Source of the DNA: Bugula neritina
Lineage: Eukaryota; Animalia; Bryozoa
Length of the DNA: 64,000 bases
NCBI GenBank assembly: GCA_964035545.1
Contig: OZ037766.1
Coordinates: 12,452,722 to 12,516,721, forward strand
Direction of reading: 5' to 3'
Of the stretch, positions 14,572 to 48,181 are shown piece after piece. Under the pieces are notes generated by a model, which worked only from the letters and a program-made list of their open reading frames with translations, did no database searches and was not told the origin of the DNA. Made by a program: the position numbers and the translations under genes. The stretch's first letter is position 1. Each line of letters begins with the position of its first letter.

Positions 14572-24496
<9,925 letters not shown>

Positions 24497-32465: not shown

Positions 32466-33102
32466 TTTTTCATCTTTTATCTCTTGAGTCACATTTTAAA
32501 CTTAGCAATAAATCTGCTAATTTTACATGCAGGTTTGTTAATTTATTATTCTGGTACATGTTACAAGACTAAGTGTGATATAGCCCATGGTTAAGGACAA
32601 TATGATAATTTTCTTTATTTGCTATGTAGGTGTGGGATCTGCACATCACAACATAAGTGCACTTATAATCATAGCCCTAAACCTTTTGAAAACTATCTAA
32701 AGTTGAAGCTAAATATTTACTTTGACAAAGACAACTACCTACGATGATGAGGCATTAGAGGATGCTTAGCCAAGAATCTTGTAAAGGAAACGAGGCTCTA
32801 TAAGTAGACAGCCCACATGTTGACAAGCGGAATAATGTTTGTCAACTTGTTTTTGCCAACGTAGTACTATAAGGCCATGTGTTGTGCACCAATATAAAAT
32901 AAAGCAAACCGTTATGGGTAAACCACAAAGCCAGCTGAAGTCAAGCTGTAAAGATAAATGAGAGAGCTAACAAAAGTTTTTATTTTTAGATAAACCTCAG
33001 AAATAAATAGCTACTTTTGGAAACAAAGGACAGTTATAGTAAGAAGTTGAACATACTTGTCAGTCTTATATAATAGAACTAGATACGTGCTAAAGGATCA
33101 TC

Positions 33103-36019
33103 ATGTATTTAAAAACATATCAAAGCAAAATCGGAATAGAAATCAGTTCATCTTTCAAGGTAAGCTTAATCTTTTCACTGTAAGATAGAGTGTAAGACTA
33201 AGTCATTAGATGTATTAAAGAAGTAATTAGATTTTGTTTAATCATACCTATTAATTTATACATATAGTAATGTTTTATAGTGTTTTAACAGTTATGAGAA
33301 AGAGTATAAATGACTGTACTTGTAGTGTGTAGTATATTCTTCAGTAATAGTAAAAGTCTAATAGTACATGTAAATTAAAATAAGCAGTTTTGAGAAGCTT
33401 TTTGTGTTGTATTAAAAATATGTTAATATGTTAATCTATAATTGATATTATTCTAAGCAAGCTTAGATCAAGTTGCTAAGAATTATTGGATGTTTTGTAG
33501 ATCTTAGCCGTAATATTCAGTTTTCAACTAATTCTCACAGAAGCCAGAAGTCTTAATAATAAAATTATGAGCAATAGTCATAGAGACATGATTAAACCAG
33601 CATGTAACAGTTTTCTATGCAAAACATCCAGGTGAGTAGCTAACCTAACTACTTAATGTAACGCAGTTAATGAATTATTTGTTTGCAACACTTGCTAAAA
33701 AATTATTAAAAGTAAAAAATTCAATTTTGCTTTTAAATTGAGTTGATTTACTATTTTAACTCATTTACAATCATTTGTAGCCACTAAAAAGAAACTGATG
33801 TCTTTTACGCTTTTTCGTTGCACAACTGAAAAATATTATTATTAATATGCATGTATTTCTCTTTTTACATAATATGATAATAACTTCTCGAATTTATATT
33901 AATGTTTCTTAAGCCCAGTCCTTGCATTGAAACAGCAAACATAATATAATAGTGCTTTATATATTATTTAAATGCTCAATGCAAATTGCCAGCAAATAAG
34001 CAAAGGCCATATTATATTTAAGTTTAATCCATTTGTTCTACATGTTCTACACATTGAGTGCAAATAAAGTCTTTGGTGCTGGGCTGGCTAAAGTTATCTC
34101 AGTTTCACCATTAATTCCTTAAACCAAGTGTCATCTTGTTTGCAGTATCAGAAATCCTTAAATTAAACTGATTAGAGATCTGTTACATTTGTTACAGTAG
34201 TTATGATGGCTAAAATCTACACATGTTTAGCTCTGTGGGCATATGAACATGTTTGGTAGAGAAGGAAAGTTAAAAATTCACACTTTTACAAAACTAAAAT
34301 AAGAAAATTTTCTATGTTTTGTTTTCAGTCACAGGCAATAAATTTGATTGAAAAATGTGTATAATGTGCTAAGCCAAATTGCATAAATTACTGTTATTAG
34401 AATTTTATTTTAAACCTAATGTTTACCAGTTTTATTGGATAACTACATTAAATTAGATGACAGATTTAAAAGACTTGTCTAATAAAAGTTTTGCAAACTA
34501 TTATTGGGCAAACAATTACTTTGCTTACATTTCTAGGGATTCTACATTTACTCATAGCAATGTTTTTGTTCTATAATTATTTACTTGCATCAAATGTGTT
34601 CTAGTTAAGCTCCTCAAATTGCTGTAAGCCTTTTCAATTTTTAAACCAAGTTTAGTGCTAAAGGTGACACTAAAAAAGTTTTCAGTAACTGAGTTCAATT
34701 AATTGCCGATTTAAGATCATATACTTGTAAACCGAGTTTAGCTGAAAGTGATGCAGAACTGCAGCTTTTCCAATACTGCTGTTGCAGCTAAAATGTATAG
34801 CATGAAAAGTAGTATGCGCCATAAGAAATATGACCCAATCTAAGCAAGAATCTACATCACGGCCCCTAAAGTTGTACTGGGATTTATTGAGTTATCTTTC
34901 AAACCGTGTAGCCGCCTAAAAGCGGAGGCGTTAGTTGGGTATTAACATGTTATCATCAAGTTTAAATATTATATTTGACGTCAAAAACCACAATTGAGAT
35001 ACTGAAAAAGAAAAACCTGAAAAGTTTTAAAGTTGCTATCAAAAGTTAAGGAAAAGAGATAACAGTTGTTGACAAGTTTAAAATTAGAATTTTTATGAGC
35101 TTTCAAATGTTATATCGGAAATATCTCTTTCATGTACAGCATTATTATCAATCCTTTATAATTCCACCCACATGGCAAACATAAGTAATTAATTTATCTT
35201 AAAATAATATCAGATTATTTATGTTATACGAGTGCCTTTTTTAATAGAAACAAAATGCAATTTATACTAATAACTAGGTTTTTGATAGCAAAATATAAAA
35301 CCCATTATATGTATTTTACAGATCTTATAAGGCAAAAGCAAAGGATATGTTGAAACCAGTAACTGAAGAACATATTTTAAGTAGAAAGAAAAGAACTGAT
35401 GCAGATGTAAAGATAGCAGAGTACATAGCCTGGATGGCAATGAATGGTCACTCTCACTCTAATTGTAGAGATATAGCTTGTGGTCTCATAGATGTCATTG
35501 ATGTTGACCAAGAGTAAGTATCTTATAAAGTCTAAAAATATGGAATATTATGATTAAATATTTTTTTCTAGACATTCATTTTTAAAAAGCAGTGGGTGTG
35601 CTATGATTACATGAAAGTAATAATTGACTGATGTGAAGTAATAAATGACACAATATTATAGTACAGTAATCTTACAATTTTTCTGGCTATTTACTACCCA
35701 CAAAATATTCCTTTTGTCTTCAATGGTCATGAGCATTGATCAGCCAGTATTAGTTTTATCATAATAACACTGAAGTAGGCATTCTTTGATTTAAGACTAA
35801 GCACTGGCTCACACTTTTTTGTTATCAGCTAGGAGCCATTCTTTAGTGTAAATGTGTTTTTTCTTATATTGGTGAAGCTGTCATGTTGCAACAACCACGC
35901 AGCCACAGCAAAACATTGTAGGCGACACTTTTTGTTGAATTTTCAGCTCAAGGGGAAAGAGGTCAACGGCTAACACAGATCCCACGTTGCAATTGGTTCA
36001 AGGCCACTCCTGGAGCTAA
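33103..36019 (+). CDS. Neuropeptide precursor, 150 aa; putative invertebrate parathyroid-hormone-like (iPTH/PXXXamide-type) amidated peptide; 4 coding exons
   Basis: Exons 33103-33159, 33501-33631, 35322-35513, 35947-36019 with donors GTAAGC, GTGAGT and GTAAGT and matching phases 0, 2, 2. Protein: MYLKTYQSKIGIEISSSFKILAVIFSFQLILTEA/RSLNNKIMSNSHRDMIKPACNSFLCKTSRSYKAKAKDMLKPVTEEHILS-RKKR-TDADVKIAEYIAWMAMNGHSHSNCRDIACGLIDVIDVDQDSR-GKR-STANTDPTLQLVQGHSWS. Precursor architecture is seen directly; the family call is from recalled motif similarity. Confidence 0.82.
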
Positions 36020-36851
36020 CTAAATATAGCTACTAGCAACCTCTAGTTGTCAAGTCATTCTCTCCAACCGGTAAGTACAACAAGACATATAAAAAGGCAC
36101 CAGGTTACAGTTAATACTGTGCTGGGAAATCTAGCCACAAGATTGTGTTATTGGCATAAATTAGAGCACGAGGCTACAGCTGAAAGATTAATATAACTGC
36201 AGGATTTAGTGTCATTTGAGGACATGACTAAAGAAAACAGAATCCTGTTCCAACTAAGTAGTTATTGATTCAATTAAAAATGTTTGTGAATGTAGTAATT
36301 ATTAACCTCAATCTTATTTCTTTTTAGGCCAATCCCAAGAATCTCTATTCTAAGAAATCACACCAAGCTGACATTCTTACTAAATTTTGTATAGACTATG
36401 GTTTGTCCTTCAGATGGAACATTGCCACAAGCAAATAGCAAGATCGAAGTGAATAATTAGGAAGACAAAATTTGTTGTATAGTATTTATATTGTAGTTTT
36501 ATTTCTCAGCATTCGTTAAAGATTGTTAAGTTGATTTTGTTTTGTTCTATGATACTCTTCTCAAAAATTTAGGCAGTTAGTATATTAACCATTAAATTAT
36601 TTTTTTTTGTAGTACTATATCTAACCAGGTTATCTAAAACTGGCTATGAAACTGCCAGCAATGAAATATTTATAATTGAAAGTTATAGCCTCTATACTTT
36701 TGTTCCTTGACATCTCATGTAATATTTTAATTATTAAAATACAAAAGATAACTAAATTCAACATCATTTTATTGAATTATAAATGTAGAAATTTATGACA
36801 GCGCAAAAAGCAGCAGCAAATACTAGCAAACAAATGATTAGCTTATGAAAC

Positions 36852-39800
36852 TCATGGATAGAAGGGCGTTTTGTGATAAATTTTGTCTTTAGAAAAAGCA
36901 TTTCTGACATGGTAGGGAGCATATGGATCATTCGGATAATGCCTGTGCCTTTTCCAGTATTTTCCAACCATTCGCTCCAGTAACCAGCTCTGCCTCTTGG
37001 TACAGAGCACATGTGTTTTCATTCTATGACGCTGAGTCTTACTTTTCCGCCACAAATGTTTATGTCTACCAGATCTGGTTCTTATCCATAAGCCACATCC
37101 TAGCCTCTTGAATCGCTCAGTAACAGCAGCGACGGTCTTTGGTCGTGCAGATTTATATGATTGATATACTCGAGTTCTAACTTGTTCCTTTTGCACAAGT
37201 CTGTTTACAAACCTGCAAACAAAATCAAACCCGCTGAGCATTTCATTTGATGGAATACAGGCTAATGCAAACAATTTAGCAGCTAGATATTATAATTTAT
37301 ACCTTACTTTTTGATAGGTAGAGATAAATTTAATGCACTACACCCACCAGTGCTGAGCATGCACAAAAAAGTGAAGTTGTCTAGCTTACATACAAACTTT
37401 AAAAAGGAAAAATTTAAACAGCGCTGACCAACTAAAGCAAATATTGGACACAAACCATGCCTACTTTATCTGATGTCACAGGTTTTTGAAACTAGAAAGA
37501 CTTTTTTGAAGAGCATTCACATGGCTTTAAAGCATAAGTACCTATTCTACTATTCAGTCAATCAAAATGATGATGTTTAATAATCAATTTCTTATAAAAT
37601 AGGAGTTGTCTGTACCATCTATGTCCTATAATAACAATAGCCAACCCCTCCTCTATTAACAACATTAGCAGGATTAGACAACTGACATGATGGTAGGCAG
37701 GCAAAGTTCAATTTACAAATATATGGAACTTCAGTGAACAACTGGCACAGTACCAAGCTTACAGCCAAACAAATCATTGCCAATTCATTTCTAAGGTAAA
37801 ATTAATAAACAGATCATCAATCAACCAAAGTAAATAAGTACCTGGAATATATGCCATATTCTACAGCTTTACTTTGCAATGGCATTAATTTCTCAATTTG
37901 TAAAGAGGGTTTTATTTGTGTTGTAGCAACAGAAAGAAATCTATATGGAACTTTAGTCAACTGCTGTGGCAGGATGCAGTTACAGCTTCCAGATGCCAGC
38001 CCTCTTATCACAGCTACAAATATAATAATCACTAGTCAAAACATAAAAGAAATTGTTTTTTTTTATTAGAAAATGTTGTGCATGTAAAAAAACAGTTATA
38101 AAAACGAAATATTATGAAGATATATACTCCTGCAATACAGACTTATGTCAATTTCTCAAAATTAAAACTTTAAATTGAAAGCACATAAAGCTATTATAAA
38201 CATGTAACTTGAATTATAATAAAAATATTTAATTAATCTCATTTAATGCCCAAACAGTGCTTTCAACCAAGAAAAATCAATGTAGGTTCACAAAGACCAA
38301 TTTTGATTTTGAGCTCAAATGCAATATTGACTTATTTCAGCTGTTCCAACACAAATATTTTTAACATATTGTTGGCAAACACAATACAATATTAAAAATC
38401 TCAGCAGTACTAGTGAATACTAAGTAATTACTACCTAAAGTCTTAGCTCATTTTGAAAAAAAAAACCATTAGATTAAATAAATTATGATGCTTTTAAATA
38501 AAAAAAACTTAAGCTGGAAAATAACATAGTATCCCTGTTTGACATTGCTGAAAAAGTCTCAAGCTACACAAAACAAAGTACAGAAATAGTTTTTAATTTA
38601 GTAACTACTCACTGTTCTAGTTTTTGTTATTTTATTGTTCAGTATGTCGCCATCTGAAAATTGTGATAATATATGAAAACACTAGTAAAAATGCTTTAAT
38701 CAGATTTTTACCTTGTAGTGTGTGTGTGTTCGCGCATATTATTTATAAATTTTGATTGCTAATTATGGTTTGAGTAAACACTAAAGCAAGAAATTACAGA
38801 GATTTTATTACCAAATATACAATATGTGAATTTTTTTGCAAAGAAAATCTTATGTATTGAGAACCTAGAAGAATGTGTGGCCAATTTTGGCTATTCTTAT
38901 TTTCGATTGTTTTATGTCTTTCCAACTTTTGCAAATAGTATACGAAAACAACAGTGCAGCAATAACTAGCTAGTTATCACAACCAAACAGGTTGTATGTC
39001 AGCAGGAGAGAAGGCAGCAGAAAAATGATGTCAGCTGAATAATATGTAAGAATAAATGAATACAGCTTGTCAGATTACATCAATAGGACAGGTATAGATA
39101 TTAGATGGAGACACCATACTGAATAACTTCTGAAGGAAAAAACTGCAGTAAACCCAAAAACGAAGAAGTGATGAGAAAACTAATGGATGGCAAGATAAAG
39201 ACTCTACATTCAGTACTTTAGAAAAGTGGAAGAAATAAACAAAATATCCGATAAGAACTGGTTAAAATCTATTTCATTGAAAATGAGAAATGAAGACTAT
39301 AAATTAGAGAACTTTAGCTGCTTAGGATCACCTACTCCCTACCAGAAATTCCAAGATAGTCACAATGAGGGAACATTGCAGCAATAAGTGTTGGGTGTGT
39401 AATGCGAGTGATGAAACTATGATGCATATACTTGGGTAATGTGAAAAGCTAGCACAAGACTGTAAAAAGGAATACGGTTATGTGGTTTCATAATTCACTG
39501 AGAATTGGTTCGACGGCCTAGCAGAATCAGTAATGGAAAGTGACAACACAAGGATATTGTGGGATTCCAACAGAAACACTGACATAGAAGATAGGTGACC
39601 TGATAATGTGACAGCCGACAAGCACAATGTGAAAGCATTGATCATATACTAAGACCTAGCATTGGAATTGACCCATCTTTAGGAAACACCAACAAAAGTG
39701 TTTTGCCATATTAATTGGAACTCCAATATTATGGCGATGAATTTCGTTGACATTTTCTAAAGGTGGGTAAATTCCAGTGCCAGGTTCTAATTTTTGCAAT

Positions 39801-42800
39801 CTTCTCGGATTCTTTCTTTTTCACCTAGCAGTGAGCAGGAGTAGCAATACTAAATTGCACTGACTGGAGTAGCTGATAACAAATGCACATCGATTCGAAA
39901 CTTGGTTTCACTAGCCCTAGGGTCAGCTCACATCTCCATCTCAAGATAAGTTTGATTCATCCCAGCCTAGTAGATTTAGACTGATGGTAGAATACAACAC
40001 CAGCAAAAAGCTGTGTTACAACCAATAGTTATAAAAATAAACTATAATAATTTACGATTCACCAACACTATAGAGTAATACTCAGACATAGCAAATGTGA
40101 TAGGTACACTTATTTAGTTATCAATTAATACTGATACTCGTGATTACCGACTTTAAGCAATTATCCTCAACCGATCAGTAATTCTAAATCAATTCAAGAT
40201 GAAGGTATGTTTGCATAAGAATTTTATAAATTAAAATTGTTTGAGCATCAGCATACAACCCTCAAACAGACTGTAGAACCAGAAGAAGATGATAGTATAA
40301 CTAGTAACTACAAGTAATTTAGTTAAGACTATTACTATTGTGGTGGCTCGTGGAGCTACCAGCAACACAATACGCAAGGTTGCGTATTGACCCGGAACAA
40401 TGTATTAGCCAATTAGCTAGGCTGTTTTATAAGTAATAGTAGCCGCTTCGCGCTACTAGTTCAGTTGAGGATAGTGCTGTAAATTAAATAGACGTGCGTA
40501 TCATTACTGTTGTACATTGGATTTTATTATGTATTCTTGTATTAAAATATAACGATATCTACTCGACTTAACTCGGTGAAGTTTCTCTAGTGATAAATAG
40601 ACTCTCTTGGTGGCACATCAACCCTAAATCTGGAAATCATAACAGTGGTGGCAGCGGTGGGATAGTGTATATCAAAGATGGAGACTGAAAATGCTAGAAT
40701 GCAACCACCCCCAGTAGAAGGTGAGCGTAGAAATGCTATTAATCCTGTGAATCGTGAGGGAGAAGAAGCTTATAGACATTGCTTGAAAGCTCCCACCTTT
40801 ACTGGGTCGGAAGATGTCGAACAATTTATACAAGAATTTAGAGAGGTAATGGAGGTTGCTCAATGGCCGCATAGAGTGGCCCTTATTCAATTGCGGAGAG
40901 CGGTGACGGAGCAAGCCAAGCTGTACGGAGTGGGAACGGACGTAGACGGCATACTGGCTGCGCTGCGGGCCCGTTTTGGCATCTCCGCAATAGACGCTAG
41001 GACCAAGCTGGAGAGATTGTGCCGCACCCCGCGGACCTCGCTGCAAGAACATGCCGCGACGGTGAAGAAGTTGGCGCAGATTGCGTATAGCGATCTGCCA
41101 GCACAACACCAAGAGCGTTACACCTATGACGCCTTTGTCCAGTCACTAAACGACCTGGGCTTACACCATCAACTACGAGCTAAAGGGATAACCAGAATAG
41201 AGGATGCCCTGAAGGCTGGAGAAGCTTACCTGTTGGCTACCCAAATGCATCAAGCACGACGGAACCCACCAGTAGTTGAAGTCAGCGCTGCCAGGGCTAC
41301 AACAAGCCCCGAAGCCCCCCCGCTAGAAGCCGAAGTGGACCGTATGGTAGAGATGCTGGGACAACTGGTAACCATTCTGGCCGGTGCTGGCCCCGGTCAA
41401 GCCCTGCGGGTGCCCCCAACGCCTGTGGGGCAGGGTTGGAGTAGCGCTGATCAGGACCAGGGACAGAAAGGACGACCCCAATACCAGGGGGCAATAAACT
41501 GTCACGGCCCGCGGACACTCTCCCTCGCCGCGGGCCGCAACTGAAGGAGTATGGTGGGACACGCCGTCGTCTGTCCGTACGGACACGACGGAACACTCCA
41601 CCCGAGTGGCAGGTACCACGCAGGACTAGTAGGCCCGCACAACGGCCGAGTAGCTTCTCCCTGCCACTCGCTAACCGGTTCCACCGGTTACCTCGGGAAG
41701 AGGAGCCCGCCACTGAAATGGAGCCAGAAGGCCCAGTGGAGAGCCCCAAACCCCGCCGGCATCAACCTCGCCGCCGGAAGCCCCGTAAACCACGGGTGAA
41801 ACCCCCGCCGTCCTGTCAATTTAGGACAGCACATGCGGGGGGGGTGAAAGTACAACCACATGGAGAGAGCTATTTCCTACCCGGAAAGGTGGCCGGCAAC
41901 GCCGTCACTTTCCTGCTCGACTCCGGTTGTACTACCAACCTTCTCAGTCGTAGAGTCTTTGAGGCACTGCCCCGCCGGGACAGGGATAGAGTACGACCGT
42001 ATACTGGGGAACATGGCACCCTGGCAGACGGGTCATGTATTCCCTTTTATGGTATTATCGAGCTCCCTGGGCGTGTCAGAGACCAGGCTGTACAGGAGAC
42101 CTTTGTCATAGGCCAACTGGAGGAAGATGCTATCCTCGGAATGCCCTTCTTGAAGCAACACCAGTGCCGAATAGACTTTAGTAAGTCGGTGGTGCTGATG
42201 GGCGGGCGAGAACTCGCCTGTGTGGATAAGTTTGGGCGTCCTCTGGTGGGCGGTGTTCAGGTAGTTCGAAACTGCACCGTACCCGGACGCTCCAGAGCTA
42301 CTATCCACTGCCGAGTGAACAGCAACCGGATAGCCAGGCTCGGGGTCGTTGAAGGCGCGCACGAAAGGATCCAACTCGCCAGTAGTTTAAACCGACTAAC
42401 TGAGCGAGGGGAGGTCTTAGTGCAGTGTGTCAACCCCTTTACCGAGCCCATTGAGCTCCCAGCTGGGTCAATGCTGGGCCGGTTCCACTCCGTCCAGGAA
42501 GAGGACGTGGGCCCGTCGCTGGGTGATGCGACGGAGGCACCCCCTCAGTGCCCTACTCAGGGACGGGGGGCAGTCCCAACACATCTCCGGGAGTTATACG
42601 AAACAGCCAGTGGCGGCTGCGCGAGTAACAGAGAACGCCAAGCTATGGCTAAGTTACTACGCGACTACGGTGATGTGTTCAGCAGCGGAGAGCATGACGT
42701 GGGACTGACTGGAATTGTCAGACACGAAATACCGCTGACTGCAGGGACAGTCCCTGTCCGGCAGCCCACACGCAGGCTGGGGCCGGAGAAAGAGAAGGAG

Positions 42801-45800
42801 GTTAGCCGACAAGTACGGGATCTTCTGGACCGGGGACTGATAGAGCCCGCCCATAGCGCGTGGAGCTCGCCAGTCGTACTGGTCCGGAAGAAAGACGGCA
42901 GTTGGCGGTTCTGTGTGGACTACCGCAAACTCAATAGCGTAACCATACAGGACGCCTACCCTCTACCTCGTATTGACGAGTCATTGGACGCCCTAGCCGG
43001 CAGCAAGTACTTCAGTACGTTAGACTTGCTCAGCGGCTATTGGCAGGTTCCTCTGAGTCCCGACGCCCAAGAGAAAGCGGCGTTTATCACACGGGACGGT
43101 TTGTGGAAGTGGAAGGTGCTGCCCTTCGGGTTAACCTCCGCCCCAGCCACCTTCCAGAGGCTGATGGAACAAGTCCTTAGCGGACTCCATTGGAAGACAC
43201 TGCTGGTCTACCTCGATGATGTCATCGTAATCTCTCCAGACTTCGAGACACATGTCAGTCGTCTGCAGGAGGTTTTCGAGAGACTCCGAGGTGCCGGTCT
43301 TAAGCTCAAACCTTCCAAGTGCGCTCTATTGCAGCCGGAGGTCAAGTACCTGGGGCACGTTGTCGGTCGAAACGGCGTGGCAACGGATCCCGAAAAGGTA
43401 CGGGCAGTAGAAGACTGGGTCACCCCCCAAGACTTGACCGGACTCCGGGCTTTCTTGGGGCTGGTAGGGTATTACAGGCAATACATACCAGACTTTGCGG
43501 GCATAGCCCAGCCGTTAAACCGGCTCACCGCAAAGGGAGTGACGTGGCAGTGGACTCCAGTCGAACAAGGAGCGTTCGACCGCCTCAAGGGCTGCCTACT
43601 AACGGCGCCCATCTTGGCCTACCCAGACCCCACTCTGGAGTACATCCTTGACACGGACGCCAGTGACCAGAATGTTGGCGCTGTGCTGTCGCAAGTGCAG
43701 GAAGGCCGAGAGGTAGTAGTAGCCTACTACAGCAAGTCTCTCTCACCCGCTGAACGAAATTACTGCACTACCCGCAAGGAGCTGCTGGCAGTAATCAAGT
43801 CAGTGAAGCACTTCAGACCATACCTATATGGCAGGAAGTTCCGGCTGCGTACGGATCATGCCTCGCTGATCTGGTTGTGCAGGAGAGCAGAGCCCTCTAG
43901 TCAGGTCGCCCGGTGGCTCGAAATCCTAGCTGAATTCTCGTACCGGATCGAACACCGACCGGGCAAGAGACACAGCAATGCGGATGGGTTGAGTCGCCGA
44001 CCTGACGGAGGTTGCAAACAGTGTCTCAACATCGAGAGGAGGGATGGAGGTCCCCCACGATGCGAGTTGGAGACGCTGGCTCATCACGGAGCACCGTTTG
44101 ATTGGGATCAAGGTCAACTCAGGCAAAGAGTTGATGAGTCCCCGGAGGATGTACAAAACCTCCGCGCCAACCCTGTACTGGCCGGTAATGTTCGAGAGCT
44201 GAAGAAGCTCCAAGAAGAGCTGCCTGGAGTCGTGGCAGACATATACCGGGCCAAAAGGGAAGGGCGACGACCCAGCGAGGAACGCATACGACAGGGATGC
44301 GCCGAGTTCCGGCTATACTGTCAGCGTTGGGACTCGCTGCGGATCGGGCAGGATGGGTTGCTAACCATCTCTCTAGCTGCCAGCGGCAGACACCCGGAAA
44401 GGAAGAGGGTAGTCTGCCCCACGGCCATCCGCCGTGAGTTGATTTGGGATACTCACAAACAGGCCCACGCAGGGGTCAAGAGAGTGATATCCAAATTACG
44501 ACTCCGGTGGTATTGGCCGCAGATGGAGCGTGACGTCCGGCTCAGAGTCAAACAGTGTGAGATCTGCCAGGCCAGTAAGCATAGCCGCCCCCCTGGTGAA
44601 GCAGGACGGCGGAGGCTATATGCTGGTAGGCCCTGGCAAGTAGTCGCTGTAGACCTGGTCGGACCCATGCCCCTGACCCCCAGAGGCAATAATTGGATAC
44701 TAGTACTAACCGACCACTTTACTAGGTGGGCGGACGCTCTGGCTATCCCAGATGCATCAGCCCCAACAGTGGCCAGGGCGCTAGACCAACATGTATTCTG
44801 TTATTTTGGGCTTCCCGAACAGATACACTCTGATCAAGGCGCTCAATTCCAGTCTCAACTGATGAGCGACCTTTGCCACCTCTGGGGAGTAAATCAGAGC
44901 AGGACCACCCCCTACCACCCTCAAGGTGACGGGGTGGTGGAGCGCAACAACCGGATGCTAGGTGATGCACTCCGGAGTCTCCTCCTTGGACGAGGTCAAG
45001 AGGAATGGGATACGGTGTTGCCGCAAGTCATGCGTGCATACCGTAGCACCCCACACACCAGTACCGGTGAGACCCCAAACCTCTTGATGCTCGGGAGAGA
45101 GACTCGTGTCCCTGACCATCTCACCTATCACGTTCCAGAGCAAGACAACTCAGTTCACGAGTATGCCAGTGAACTAGTGGAACGGATGAAGGCCGCACAC
45201 GATATACTGCGTCAACAGCAGTGGAAGGTGCGGCACGAAGATTCCGATGAACCACCTCTCTATCAAACGGGAGATAAGGTGTGGATGGTCAATTACCGTA
45301 GGCGTCGCGGACAGGCTGATAAACTGAAGCCTAAGTTCGTAGGCCCCTACGTGGTCGTCGAGGCTATGCCCAATCATACGTACAAGATTGAGCGCTCAGG
45401 ACAGGTGTCTATCCAGAATGAGTCTCGCTTGAAACCGTATTGGGCTAGCCCTGACGGAGTGGGAGAAGCCCCCCCGTTGTTAGAGCCCAGGAGGCAGACA
45501 ACGACGCGCGGGCGACGGCGGCATGGACCTGAATACGAAGTGGTCATACCGCGGGAGGAAAACTTGGTGAGAGAGGAGCGGCAGCTTTTGTCAACAGAAG
45601 CGTGTCCGCCACCGCCAAGTCTAATTCCATCACTTCCAGAAACCGAGCCGGTTCCGGAAGTGCAAACCCCCACGGAGGGAGGGGCTCCATCCGGAGAACA
45701 AGAAGAGGTGACCGCTAACGGTGAAGTAGAGACGCCATTAGAGGCCCCTACTAACGAACCGGCAAGCGTGTCACCCCCCCTAGAAAGGGGACAGCGTACG

Positions 45801-48181
45801 AGGAAACCCCCACCATATTTAAAAGACTTCGTATGTGACTGCATTAGAAGCGGCGCACATGAAAGTCTAGGGGAAAACCGTACGATAAAATGTTGGAGTT
45901 GTGAACCCCACGCAAATATCAACTTTTGCGAGGGCGGAATAGTGGGAGGAATTAATGCGCGTAAAGCAAATAGTTCCGACCTCGTGCCTCAGAAATGATG
46001 CTCAGCCTTTTCTTATGCTGACATCGCCAAAGGCAGACGTATCTCACAACCAGCTCCAACCTTACCAAGAACGTTGAGTATGGACATTAATACCGAGTTC
46101 CCAGGTAAGCCAGTATAAGTCTTGTATTCCTATTCATGGAAACGGGCTCGATGCCAGTAAATTCTGAACTAATTCGACAGATTGAATCAGAATTACTGGG
46201 AACCACGTTTCATGTGAATGACGATGAAGACACTGTAATGGCCGACGGTCTGTTAGACCTGGAGCTAGACACTGTTCTTGGTCAGTCCACACATGATTCA
46301 TCAGTTCCTCGAGTGCATTCCAAAAGCTGTGACTCTCAGGCTAGCAACGGTCGACAGTCATTAGAATTATGTTGTAAAGATCCACCGCGATCTAACAATA
46401 ATTCTACTTTTGTAGACACACTCGCGCCCGTCTCTCCGGGCATGCCTTCTCTAGAGATGGCGTGGGACCCAGAGCCGGCCCCAACAACTTCTACAACCAG
46501 GCAACTGCCACCCCAGTTGGAAGCAACCTCCAACTGGATTACCCCTGCCACAGAGAGAGAAATCAGGACCCATCAAGGAGGTGAGAGTAATCGTGAATGC
46601 AACCTCTGCCAACAGCGATTCACAACCCACCGCAGACTAAAAGTACACTTGCCGCAGCACTACATCACCACTTTCTGCCCTTGCGGAGAATATAGCTACA
46701 ATCGTGATTACCTATTGCGGCACCAACGTACTATGCAGTGTTATCAAGGGCATGTCTATGAAGTAGACGAATCATCCTATCCTGCCTTTCTCAACGCCAT
46801 CAAACCACTCATCACTGACTCAGCTCGGCTATCTCGCCTGGAGCAAGGCTTCCCTTCCCCGCGACCCATCATCTCTGGAGCCGCAGATAAACCTACACAG
46901 TCTACTAACTCTCCACCTCACAGTCCTCTACGCATGCCGCATACCTTTCCTCGTGTCGTACTACAGAGGGTAGACACAAATGCGTATACACTCCCTCCTC
47001 CCCTTCCATCCTCAGAGCGGAAAAGACATAGACAGCCGACTTCCTCTCGCTCGTCCCCCTGGGCCCGCAACCTACGTGAAGTAGAAGCTAGGGCACACGA
47101 CTTGGAGCAAGAAGTGTACAGACTGGCCCCACGGGTGCAGGCTGCATCCAGTGAACTCAAATATTTACAGGAGTCTATTAAACGCATGAAGCGTGTGGCC
47201 CGCAGTTAACTGGAATCTATCTCCAACTCTATACTACTCTTCCCCTACCTCTCTGTGGCATTCCCTACCGTTATGGTGGCACGTACTCTACATGTAGATA
47301 GGACTTTCTCTTACTTATTACATATTGTGCACGTTATATATACCTGTATATTTTATCAGTTGTTGTTTTTTTTGTATATACTTTTATACTGTTCTCTTAC
47401 CCCCCCACGACGAAGTATACGTTTTTTATGTGAATTTTATTTTATCAGAAAGTGGGCTTTCTGCTGGAGGGGGCAGTGTGGTGGCTCGTGGAGCTACCAG
47501 CAACACAATACGCAAGGTTGCGTATTGACCCGGAACAATGTATTAGCCAATTAGCTAGGCTGTTTTATAAGTAATAGTAGCCGCTTCGCGCTACTAGTTC
47601 AGTTGAGGATAGTGCTGTAAATTAAATAGACGTGCGTATCATTACTGTTGTACATTGGATTTTATTATGTATTCTTGTATTAAAATATAACGATATCTAC
47701 TCGACTTAACTCGGTGAAGTTTCTCTAGTGATAAATAGACTCTCTTGGTGGCACATCAACCCTAAATCTGGAAATCATAACACTATTAGTATTAGTATTG
47801 AATTAAAATATCAATATGAGTTAATCATAATGATAATGTTATACTAAATCTAATAGTATAACATGTATTAATAGTTATCTGAGTAATACTTATAGTTATA
47901 CTTATATTTATATTTATAGCAATGCTAATACTAATAGTTGTAATCTATTATTAATCTTGTAACCAACTGACAGTAAGTGTAACTTCAACTTCAAGTTCAA
48001 ACTTGTAAGTTGTAGCTCATAGTCATAGTGATAGTATTAGTTGCCAAGTCTAACACAGGAACAGCAGGTATTGTATTTGTATATTAATTCAAAGAACTAT
48101 GAAGTTACAATTAATATCATAACTCAATGTTCAAGTAAAATTTAATTAATTACCAGCAGAAAATTGTCTTATCAAAGCCAT
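36852..48181 (-). CDS. MRPL35: Mitochondrial ribosomal protein L35 (bL35m), 186 aa; 3 exons, intron 1 = 10.1 kb
   Basis: Exons 48181-48154 (MALIRQFSA+G, GTAATT donor), 38013-37842, 37212-36852; phases 1 and 2 match, total 561 nt. Signature KTVAAVTERFKRLGCGLWIRTRSGRHKHLWRK...DPYAPYHVR. Exon 1 is less certain than exons 2-3. Confidence 0.88.
39150..39725 (+). mobile_element. Decayed 3' fragment of a non-LTR retrotransposon with restriction-like endonuclease (R4/Dong/NeSL-like)
   Basis: Stop- and frameshift-disrupted remnants: A*DHLLPTR, KCWVCNASDETMMHILG*CEKLAQ (CCHC knuckle), AESVMESDNTRILWD...R*PDNVTADK (PD-D endonuclease) and DLALELTHL. Confidence 0.75.
40339..40644 (+). repeat. 5' LTR
   Basis: TGTGGTGGCTCG...GGAAATCATAACA; no difference from the 3' LTR found by eye. 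Confidence 0.97.
40646..40663 (+). promoter_or_regulatory. Primer-binding site, tRNA-Leu
   Basis: TGGTGGCAGCGGTGGGAT, 1 nt after the LTR, complementary to the 3' end (AUCCCACCGCUGCCACCA) of metazoan tRNA-Leu(AAG/TAG). Confidence 0.88.
40678..41544 (+). CDS. gag: Gag, 288 aa
   Basis: First ORF after the PBS; capsid-like KAPTFTGSEDVEQFIQEF...W...LRARFG; no intact CCHC knuckle. Confidence 0.9.
   Translation: METENARMQPPPVEGERRNAINPVNREGEEAYRHCLKAPTFTGSEDVEQFIQEFREVMEVAQWPHRVALIQLRRAVTEQAKLYGVGTDVDGILAALRARFGISAIDARTKLERLCRTPRTSLQEHAATVKKLAQIAYSDLPAQHQERYTYDAFVQSLNDLGLHHQLRAKGITRIEDALKAGEAYLLATQMHQARRNPPVVEVSAARATTSPEAPPLEAEVDRMVEMLGQLVTILAGAGPGQALRVPPTPVGQGWSSADQDQGQKGRPQYQGAINCHGPRTLSLAAGRN
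41493..41536 (+). promoter_or_regulatory. Putative -1 ribosomal frameshift signal
   Basis: A_ATA_AAC, 6-nt spacer, then a perfect 9-bp stem GGCCCGCGG/CCGCGGGCC (41506-41536), all inside the gag/pol overlap 41451-41544. Pol is -1 relative to gag. Confidence 0.7.
41718..45998 (+). CDS. pol: Pol polyprotein (protease, RT, RNase H, integrase); frame is open from 41451
   Basis: LLDSG protease; WSSPVVLV, RFCVDYR, LPFGL and YLDD in RT; TDAS and ELLA in RNase H; H-H-C-C, VDLVGP/SDQG/VER and GPY in integrase. No internal stops. Confidence 0.97.
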   Translation: MEPEGPVESPKPRRHQPRRRKPRKPRVKPPPSCQFRTAHAGGVKVQPHGESYFLPGKVAGNAVTFLLDSGCTTNLLSRRVFEALPRRDRDRVRPYTGEHGTLADGSCIPFYGIIELPGRVRDQAVQETFVIGQLEEDAILGMPFLKQHQCRIDFSKSVVLMGGRELACVDKFGRPLVGGVQVVRNCTVPGRSRATIHCRVNSNRIARLGVVEGAHERIQLASSLNRLTERGEVLVQCVNPFTEPIELPAGSMLGRFHSVQEEDVGPSLGDATEAPPQCPTQGRGAVPTHLRELYETASGGCASNRERQAMAKLLRDYGDVFSSGEHDVGLTGIVRHEIPLTAGTVPVRQPTRRLGPEKEKEVSRQVRDLLDRGLIEPAHSAWSSPVVLVRKKDGSWRFCVDYRKLNSVTIQDAYPLPRIDESLDALAGSKYFSTLDLLSGYWQVPLSPDAQEKAAFITRDGLWKWKVLPFGLTSAPATFQRLMEQVLSGLHWKTLLVYLDDVIVISPDFETHVSRLQEVFERLRGAGLKLKPSKCALLQPEVKYLGHVVGRNGVATDPEKVRAVEDWVTPQDLTGLRAFLGLVGYYRQYIPDFAGIAQPLNRLTAKGVTWQWTPVEQGAFDRLKGCLLTAPILAYPDPTLEYILDTDASDQNVGAVLSQVQEGREVVVAYYSKSLSPAERNYCTTRKELLAVIKSVKHFRPYLYGRKFRLRTDHASLIWLCRRAEPSSQVARWLEILAEFSYRIEHRPGKRHSNADGLSRRPDGGCKQCLNIERRDGGPPRCELETLAHHGAPFDWDQGQLRQRVDESPEDVQNLRANPVLAGNVRELKKLQEELPGVVADIYRAKREGRRPSEERIRQGCAEFRLYCQRWDSLRIGQDGLLTISLAASGRHPERKRVVCPTAIRRELIWDTHKQAHAGVKRVISKLRLRWYWPQMERDVRLRVKQCEICQASKHSRPPGEAGRRRLYAGRPWQVVAVDLVGPMPLTPRGNNWILVLTDHFTRWADALAIPDASAPTVARALDQHVFCYFGLPEQIHSDQGAQFQSQLMSDLCHLWGVNQSRTTPYHPQGDGVVERNNRMLGDALRSLLLGRGQEEWDTVLPQVMRAYRSTPHTSTGETPNLLMLGRETRVPDHLTYHVPEQDNSVHEYASELVERMKAAHDILRQQQWKVRHEDSDEPPLYQTGDKVWMVNYRRRRGQADKLKPKFVGPYVVVEAMPNHTYKIERSGQVSIQNESRLKPYWASPDGVGEAPPLLEPRRQTTTRGRRRHGPEYEVVIPREENLVREERQLLSTEACPPPPSLIPSLPETEPVPEVQTPTEGGAPSGEQEEVTANGEVETPLEAPTNEPASVSPPLERGQRTRKPPPYLKDFVCDCIRSGAHESLGENRTIKCWSCEPHANINFCEGGIVGGINARKANSSDLVPQK
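46136..47209 (+). CDS. Extra retrotransposon ORF3: zinc-finger and coiled-coil protein, 357 aa
   Basis: CNLCQQRFTTHRRLKVHLPQH (C2H2), CPCGEYSYNRDYLLRHQRTMQC (atypical finger), basic RKRHR, C-terminal heptad helix. No signal peptide or TM segment, so not env-like. Confidence 0.8.
   Translation: METGSMPVNSELIRQIESELLGTTFHVNDDEDTVMADGLLDLELDTVLGQSTHDSSVPRVHSKSCDSQASNGRQSLELCCKDPPRSNNNSTFVDTLAPVSPGMPSLEMAWDPEPAPTTSTTRQLPPQLEATSNWITPATEREIRTHQGGESNRECNLCQQRFTTHRRLKVHLPQHYITTFCPCGEYSYNRDYLLRHQRTMQCYQGHVYEVDESSYPAFLNAIKPLITDSARLSRLEQGFPSPRPIISGAADKPTQSTNSPPHSPLRMPHTFPRVVLQRVDTNAYTLPPPLPSSERKRHRQPTSSRSSPWARNLREVEARAHDLEQEVYRLAPRVQAASSELKYLQESIKRMKRVARS
47466..47476 (+). promoter_or_regulatory. Polypurine tract
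   Basis: GGAGGGGGCAG directly before the 3' LTR. Confidence 0.8.
47477..47782 (+). repeat. 3' LTR
   Basis: 306 bp, matches the 5' LTR, followed by TSD CTAT. Confidence 0.97.

Follow-up and report, generated by a model that had tools for sequence, protein, structure and literature searches.

QSGa was described from Platynereis (Conzelmann 2013, PMC3890597), and the iPTH/PXXXamide peptides of insects have been deorphanised on PTH-receptor-like GPCRs (Xie 2020, PMC7224569). Cysteine-containing forms of Lingula, Phoronis, Sepia, Lottia, Crassostrea, Octopus, and annelids are entered as PTH/iPTH transcripts in the S1 Table of the latter study, and one of the Lottia forms has the ring C-R-D-I-A-C-G, identical to that of the Bugula neritina peptide described here (PMC7224569). 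In molluscs, brachiopods, and phoronids, a single gene encodes both the cysteine-ring and the cysteine-free peptide type by means of alternative exons; in the oyster, most of the forms derived from such exons have been detected by mass spectrometry, and transcript levels are highest in the digestive gland and gonad (PMC8398477). The iPTH system affects cuticle maturation in Tribolium and feeding and ecdysis in Ixodes. Receptor activation has been shown for cysteine-free iPTH only, and Thiel 2021, in which the orthology was confirmed, states that the pairing of QSGamide with the PTH receptor is unproven in lophotrochozoans (PMC8557429). The only neuropeptide survey of Bugula that we found contains 11 precursors, QSGamide/iPTH not being among them (PMC4990251). 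We found no report of QSGamide/iPTH in bryozoans in the searchable literature; an earlier record may exist, an ectoproct having been sampled in De Oliveira 2019.

Here we describe a locus of the cheilostome B. neritina (or of a member of its species complex) that very probably is a neuropeptide or peptide-hormone gene for a QSGamide-type peptide, the cysteine-ring kind within the protostome iPTH/QSGamide/PXXXamide family. Positions given without a prefix refer to the window, i.e., the whole 64,000-nucleotide stretch of DNA that was analysed.

Gene structure, transcription, and precursor layout

The peptide gene has four coding exons (33103 to 33159, 33501 to 33631, 35322 to 35513, and 35947 to 36019) with AG/GT splice ends; the phases are 0/2/2. 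Upstream of the ATG at 33103, the reading frame is blocked by an in-frame stop at 33091. The GenBank entry KAF6031819.1 (P0002; hypothetical protein EB796_009878, Bugula neritina, 150 aa) maps onto these four exons, and the exon 3 protein clusters with it. The exons of the window were searched singly; the full-length protein in the analyses was this public record. Thus, the originally predicted four-exon model with a 150-aa product is borne out by the splice sites, the phases, the coding total of 453 nt (150 codons plus the stop), and a GenBank model of the same structure.

Logan contigs from four runs, each belonging to a different study, lack all three coding introns, so that each of the predicted junctions (33159/33501, 33631/35322, and 35513/35947) is present in spliced contigs. 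The Logan runs are typed as RNA by guess only; contigs without introns nevertheless represent spliced cDNA whatever the run label, since such contigs are impossible from this genomic DNA. A fourth intron (36071 to 36327), located in the 3' UTR, is also missing from the contigs, and the gene therefore has five exons, the fifth being non-coding. The Logan animals and the window are a few percent apart in sequence, and at position 35947, in the third junction, the animals carry A where the window has C, changing the split codon from Asp to Glu. Other acceptors up to position 40000, considered as starts of alternative last exons, yield no amidation signal; the acceptor used in the RNA contigs is that at 35947. 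The locus is a real, transcribed, and spliced gene of B. neritina. It had been described as hidden; its four coding exons stand, but the gene is annotated in GenBank, although unnamed, and the non-coding fifth exon had been missed.

Exon 1 (32923 to 33159, plus strand) comprises the 5' UTR, the transcript contigs beginning at about 32923 to 32949, and codons 1 to 19, which encode the basic n-region of the putative signal peptide. Exon 2 (33501 to 33631, plus strand) encodes the hydrophobic core of the putative signal peptide, with cleavage predicted after Ala34 (33545), and a part of the pro-region. The signal-peptide region consists of a long n-region of 19 aa and an 11-residue hydrophobic core (mean Kyte-Doolittle value, 2.6) followed by T-E-A; the core with its T-E-A is kept in Watersipora and in a Bugula paralog. 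Exon 3 (35322 to 35513, plus strand) contains the end of the pro-region, the dibasic site RKKR (35383 to 35394; RRKR in the GenBank allele), and, directly after it, the single mature peptide, of which residues 1 to 39 (35395 to 35511) include the N-terminal helix and the C-x4-C-G ring (cysteine codons at 35464 and 35479). Exon 4 (35947 to 36070, plus strand) encodes the end of the mature peptide, the GKR signal (35954 to 35962), and an 18-aa C-terminal extension, and it also contains the stop codon (36017 to 36019) and the start of the 3' UTR. Exon 5 (36328 to 36761, plus strand) is 3' UTR; the contigs stop at 36662 and 36761 or continue into mRpL35.

The stop codon precedes the exon junction of the 3' UTR by 51 nt, or by 53 nt in the RNA allele, which is borderline under the 50- to 55-nt rule of nonsense-mediated decay; the spliced transcript is found in all four runs. 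Across the interval from 36328 to 36852, the 3' UTR runs towards the convergent neighbour mRpL35, the last coding exon of which (36852 to 37214, minus strand) lies outside the peptide gene and serves as a synteny marker. A single contig spans both genes in two of the runs, suggesting that either their 3' ends overlap or the contig is an assembly join.

The predicted mature peptide thus comprises 39 codons, a split codon, and 2 further codons, i.e., 42 aa, with an N-terminal Thr, a cysteine ring opening at residue 24 of the 42, and a predicted Arg-amide end. AlphaFold placed a helix at residues 3 to 18 of a 47-residue piece (pLDDT, 74 to 78), a result of modest confidence that leaves the remainder unresolved. 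The original prediction of a prohormone architecture is supported as far as both sites are concerned, RKKR being present at 35383 to 35394 and GKR at 35954 to 35962 on the spliced exon. Processing would then follow established prohormone biochemistry: the signal peptide would direct the precursor to the secretory pathway, furin or a prohormone convertase would cut after R-K-K-R and after G-K-R, carboxypeptidase E would remove K-R, PAM would turn the Gly into the amide, and the two cysteines would close a six-residue ring, releasing a 42-aa peptide with an N-terminal helix. We regard these steps (signal, convertase, carboxypeptidase, PAM, and disulfide) as likely. The C-terminus, with its IDV-IDV run and SR-amide, had been considered unusual and is mildly so; it is not unique, as the first IDV is a family motif that is present in the paralog too, the IDV-IDV run also occurs in the unnamed relative P0010, and a Novocrania member is listed with an Arg-amide end.

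The pro-region has a second cysteine pair, C-x3-L-C (33603 to 33620, with cysteine codons at 33603 and 33618), which is invariant in Bugula, Watersipora (P0014), and an unnamed precursor (P0044), while the pro-regions of the three are otherwise poorly conserved. The pair is followed by R-S-Y in two of the three precursors and may serve in folding or belong to a second released peptide.

Family assignment, constraint, and the paralog

A profile made of exon 3 and the corresponding exon of the paralog was searched against 1.84 billion proteins and matched 46 at E values of ≤1e-3; of these, 43 are short precursors sharing the motif, and the 3 long ones look spurious. Twenty of the 46 were looked up: 14 were from molluscs, 2 from Watersipora, and 4 were unnamed, so that all 14 named non-bryozoan matches were mollusc proteins. 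Several of the mollusc precursors carry the cysteine-ring and the cysteine-free PXXXamide-type peptides together. As a non-circular test, profiles were built from non-bryozoan rows only, with nine rows each for the cysteine-ring form (seven named or clustered as mollusc and two unnamed near-copies of mollusc matches) and the cysteine-free form. Exon 3 was matched by the cysteine-ring profile at an E value of 7e-16 (next unrelated frame, 0.63) and by the cysteine-free PXXXamide profile at 7e-5 (best background, 4.2). Based on these similarities, the Bugula gene almost certainly belongs to the iPTH/QSGamide/PXXXamide family, and the originally suggested kinship to invertebrate PTH-like (iPTH/PXXXamide) peptides is upheld.

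Within the family, the peptide is a variant of the cysteine-ring QS(G)amide subtype, and not the PXXXamide form. It contains both the D-x-x-x-A-E helix motif, in which Asp and Ala are invariant and Glu is present in at least 90% of the rows in a 27-row alignment, and the ring motif C-x4-C-G-[LV]-[IV]-D. The N-terminal Gln and the common Ser-amide end of the cysteine-ring subtype are both absent, which is why we classify it as a variant and not as a typical member; all the published cysteine-ring members in the lists that we compared begin with Gln. The peptide has two cysteines and no Pro at position -4, in contrast to the cysteine-free PXXXamides. Hence, the family part of the original iPTH/PXXXamide label holds, whereas the label does not fit in the narrower sense of the PXXXamide form, the one with demonstrated activity on the receptors of insects and ticks. 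No family name was obtained from Pfam, PDB, or the ESM Atlas (the Atlas matches were generic neuropeptide precursors under 0.9), and a word-based protein search returned either the peptide gene itself or no match. In the tree of 27 mature peptides, only the clade of non-amidated paralogs was firmly supported, and since it is based on 42 columns, the tree was not used for deeper claims.

A comparison of the window with the GenBank haplotype indicated constraint on the mature peptide. Of the aligned sites, 8.2% differ in the introns and 6 to 8% in the pro-region exons, whereas none of the 119 nt of mature-peptide DNA in exon 3 differs between the two Bugula haplotypes (P of about 4e-5 at the intron rate). 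The mature peptide is under purifying selection. On a larger scale, the region from 23227 to 52566 is only 85 to 94% identical to the GenBank B. neritina assembly (L071) over long stretches, which is consistent with cryptic species or strongly diverged haplotypes.

The unnamed Watersipora subatra protein XP_067936399.1 (P0014) is the syntenic orthologue: its four exons have phases 0/2/2, its pro-region carries the cysteine pair, and its gene is arranged tail to tail with mRpL35, as in the Bugula window. It differs from the Bugula protein in its shorter C-terminus (I-N-S-G-R) and short n-region. Two other elements of the neighbourhood were identified. The large intron of mRpL35 harbours a Ty3/gypsy-type LTR retrotransposon (40339 to 47780), whose two 300-nt repeats are identical and whose pol frame is uninterrupted. 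A CTAT target-site duplication accompanies the element, which is missing from the GenBank haplotype, in line with a recent insertion. The upstream neighbour is a gene for a secretory-pathway Ca2+/Mn2+ P-type ATPase, which we take to be SPCA-like, with its long last exon at 22940 to 24496 (Pfam Cation_ATPase_C); no evidence was found for a functional link between this gene and the peptide gene.

Profile searches identified only two genes of the family in the Bugula genome. The second one, on another contig at G000:C1:15721519 (model L002:628-1608; G000:C1:15720646-15721626, plus strand), has three predicted exons, with phases 0 and 2 as in the amidated gene. Its cysteine-ring peptide ends at a stop codon without a Gly and is thus predicted to be non-amidated. 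Likewise, a second unnamed Watersipora protein, XP_067928920.1 (P0015), ends at a stop without a Gly, and it groups with the Bugula paralog with 96/99 support. Both Watersipora peptides also lack the N-terminal Gln.

No separate cysteine-free PXXXamide exon was detected in the 216-Mb genome by a profile search with a loose first look in which only four candidates were scored; the best match to the PXXXamide profile genome-wide was exon 3 of the amidated gene (E value, 0.18). Similarly, a motif scan and a local HMM search identified no alternative PXXXamide exon in the introns and flanks, and none was found in 22.7 kb of the Watersipora locus. The simplest reading of these sequence searches is that the cysteine-free form may have been lost; they could overlook an exon that is diverged or split by an intron.

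Candidate receptors and alternative explanations

Exon-wise searches of the Bugula genome revealed at least five class B1-like GPCR genes. Two of them show features of cluster B (the PTH/glucagon-receptor group), an assignment given by the best matches of single exons: one on C4 at 22.72 Mb (L052/L067; G000:C4:22718530-22729500) and one on C5 at 14.86 Mb (L051; G000:C5:14864292-14869400). For the C4 receptor, the top 60 matches of the TM2 exon comprised only glucagon, PACAP, secretin, and PTH group receptors, and the best PDB match of the TM6 exon was PTH1R (E value, 1e-11); for the TM3 exon, the calcitonin receptor scored slightly better. The TM2, TM3, and TM6 exons of the C5 receptor best matched the GLP-1, secretin/PTH, and PTH1 receptors, respectively. 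A control locus gave matches to calcitonin-group receptors only. The search for a PTH-receptor-like GPCR, suggested along with the original prediction, thus turned up two candidate cluster-B genes, both with TM6 exons that match PTH1R best.

By orthology, the 42-aa peptide would activate one or both of these cluster-B class B1 GPCRs, most likely via Gs/cAMP or calcium, and we consider a pairing with a cluster-B receptor reasonably probable. Our best guess, made with low confidence, is that the peptide may act as a neuroendocrine or gut/gonad signal in growth or metamorphosis. More tentatively, and at somewhat less than an even chance, the cheilostomes may have lost the cysteine-free PXXXamide, so that two disulfide-ring peptides, one amidated and one not, pair with the two cluster-B receptors. 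If the family and the processing are as proposed, the cysteine-ring peptides could instead use a class B1 receptor outside cluster B (e.g., of the calcitonin/DH31, CRF, or PDF type), with an undetected cysteine-free peptide serving cluster B. Assays of these receptors have used cysteine-free iPTH only (PMC7224569; bioRxiv 10.64898/2026.06.22.733765), other class B1 receptors are present in the genome, and the genome search for PXXXamide was, as noted, a loose one. This alternative is nonetheless unlikely, as that search found no separate PXXXamide exon in the 216 Mb, though its profile did pick up the more distant cysteine-ring exon 3 as best match, and as both peptide types derive from one gene in molluscs, brachiopods, and phoronids.

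Certain features count against the favoured QSGamide-type assignment with a cluster-B receptor, namely, the lack of the N-terminal Gln and of the Ser-amide, the 19-aa n-region, and the TM3 exon of the C4 receptor being nearer to the calcitonin receptor. CGRP and amylin also carry a six-residue cysteine ring, and the peptide has no Pfam family, no PDB peptide match, and only generic Atlas precursors under 0.9, as would be expected if it belonged to a new family or were a calcitonin/CGRP-like peptide merely resembling QSGamide. We regard this as extremely improbable, since it is refuted by the E value obtained with the mollusc-only QSamide profile; a ring located in the C-terminal half, after the conserved D-x-x-x-A-E-Y helix, and the conserved precursor layout also speak against it. 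The cysteine rings of the calcitonin family are N-terminal, and the hallmarks of calcitonin, CGRP, and DH31 are an N-terminal cysteine ring or the DH31 motif and a Pro-amide or aromatic amide end. Membership in the calcitonin/CGRP/DH31 group was rejected on the basis of the ring position (residue 24 of 42), the profile results, and the absence of a Pfam or PDB match. If the hormone family had given rise to a secreted toxin or defence peptide, this would also be small, secreted, disulfide bonded, and amidated (all predicted here) and present in whole-animal libraries. Defence peptides usually expand and diversify, whereas here there are two genes only, a mature peptide that has not diverged between the haplotypes, and a syntenic Watersipora orthologue, making this reading highly improbable.

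With the QSGamide-type assignment, the hypothetical protein EB796_009878 (KAF6031819.1) gains a family name, and, judging by the literature that can be searched, the QSGamide/iPTH system is recorded here for the first time in Bryozoa. In molluscs, cysteine-ring and cysteine-free forms occur in one gene, and their roles are confounded. Since only cysteine-ring forms were found in Bugula, beside two candidate receptors, the question of a QSGamide-PTH receptor pairing becomes simple to test. If both the loss and the pairing of two ligands with two receptors are true, Bugula would provide a clean test of cysteine-ring QSGamides as ligands of invertebrate PTH receptors, and the amide would be shown to be dispensable.

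Comparison with known peptide systems

The similarity to the vertebrate peptides PTH, PTHrP, and TIP39 is limited to the receptor orthology group. The identity between iPTH and vertebrate PTH is under 12% (Xie 2020, PMC7224569), and no PTH chain in PDB was matched by our profile. "PTH-like" refers to the receptor and not to calcium physiology, and nothing beyond the receptor name connects the Bugula peptide with the control of calcium or the skeleton. With the iPTH/PXXXamide peptides of Tribolium, Ixodes, and Sepia, the Bugula peptide shares a homologous N-terminal helix, the precursor layout, and the strictly conserved signal of Gly plus basic residues, and the iPTH receptor group is represented in the Bugula genome. 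However, iPTH is cysteine free and has the sequence H-G-x-x-D-P-x-x-x-amide, whereas the Bugula peptide has a predicted disulfide ring and no Pro at position -4.

The closest counterparts are the QSGamides/QSamides of lophotrochozoans. Shared elements include a predicted signal peptide, the dibasic site, a single peptide with the D-x-x-x-A-E-Y helix and C-x4-C-G-[LV]-[IV]-D, the Gly plus basic residues, and the C-terminal extension, and the peptide is homologous to the QS(G)amides of molluscs, annelids, brachiopods, and phoronids. The Bugula peptide, however, starts with Thr and has no pyroglutamate, while the lophotrochozoan QSGamides start with Gln; it has five extra residues between the ring motif and the Gly compared to most mollusc forms; and it ends in a predicted Arg-amide instead of the usual Ser-amide. 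Its pro-region is longer and has an additional cysteine pair, and no alternative PXXXamide exon was detected. Rather than an undescribed hormone system, as was originally proposed, the Bugula gene extends to bryozoans a known system from a family already described in annelids, molluscs, brachiopods, phoronids, and nemerteans (PMC3890597, PMC7224569, PMC8398477, PMC8557429).
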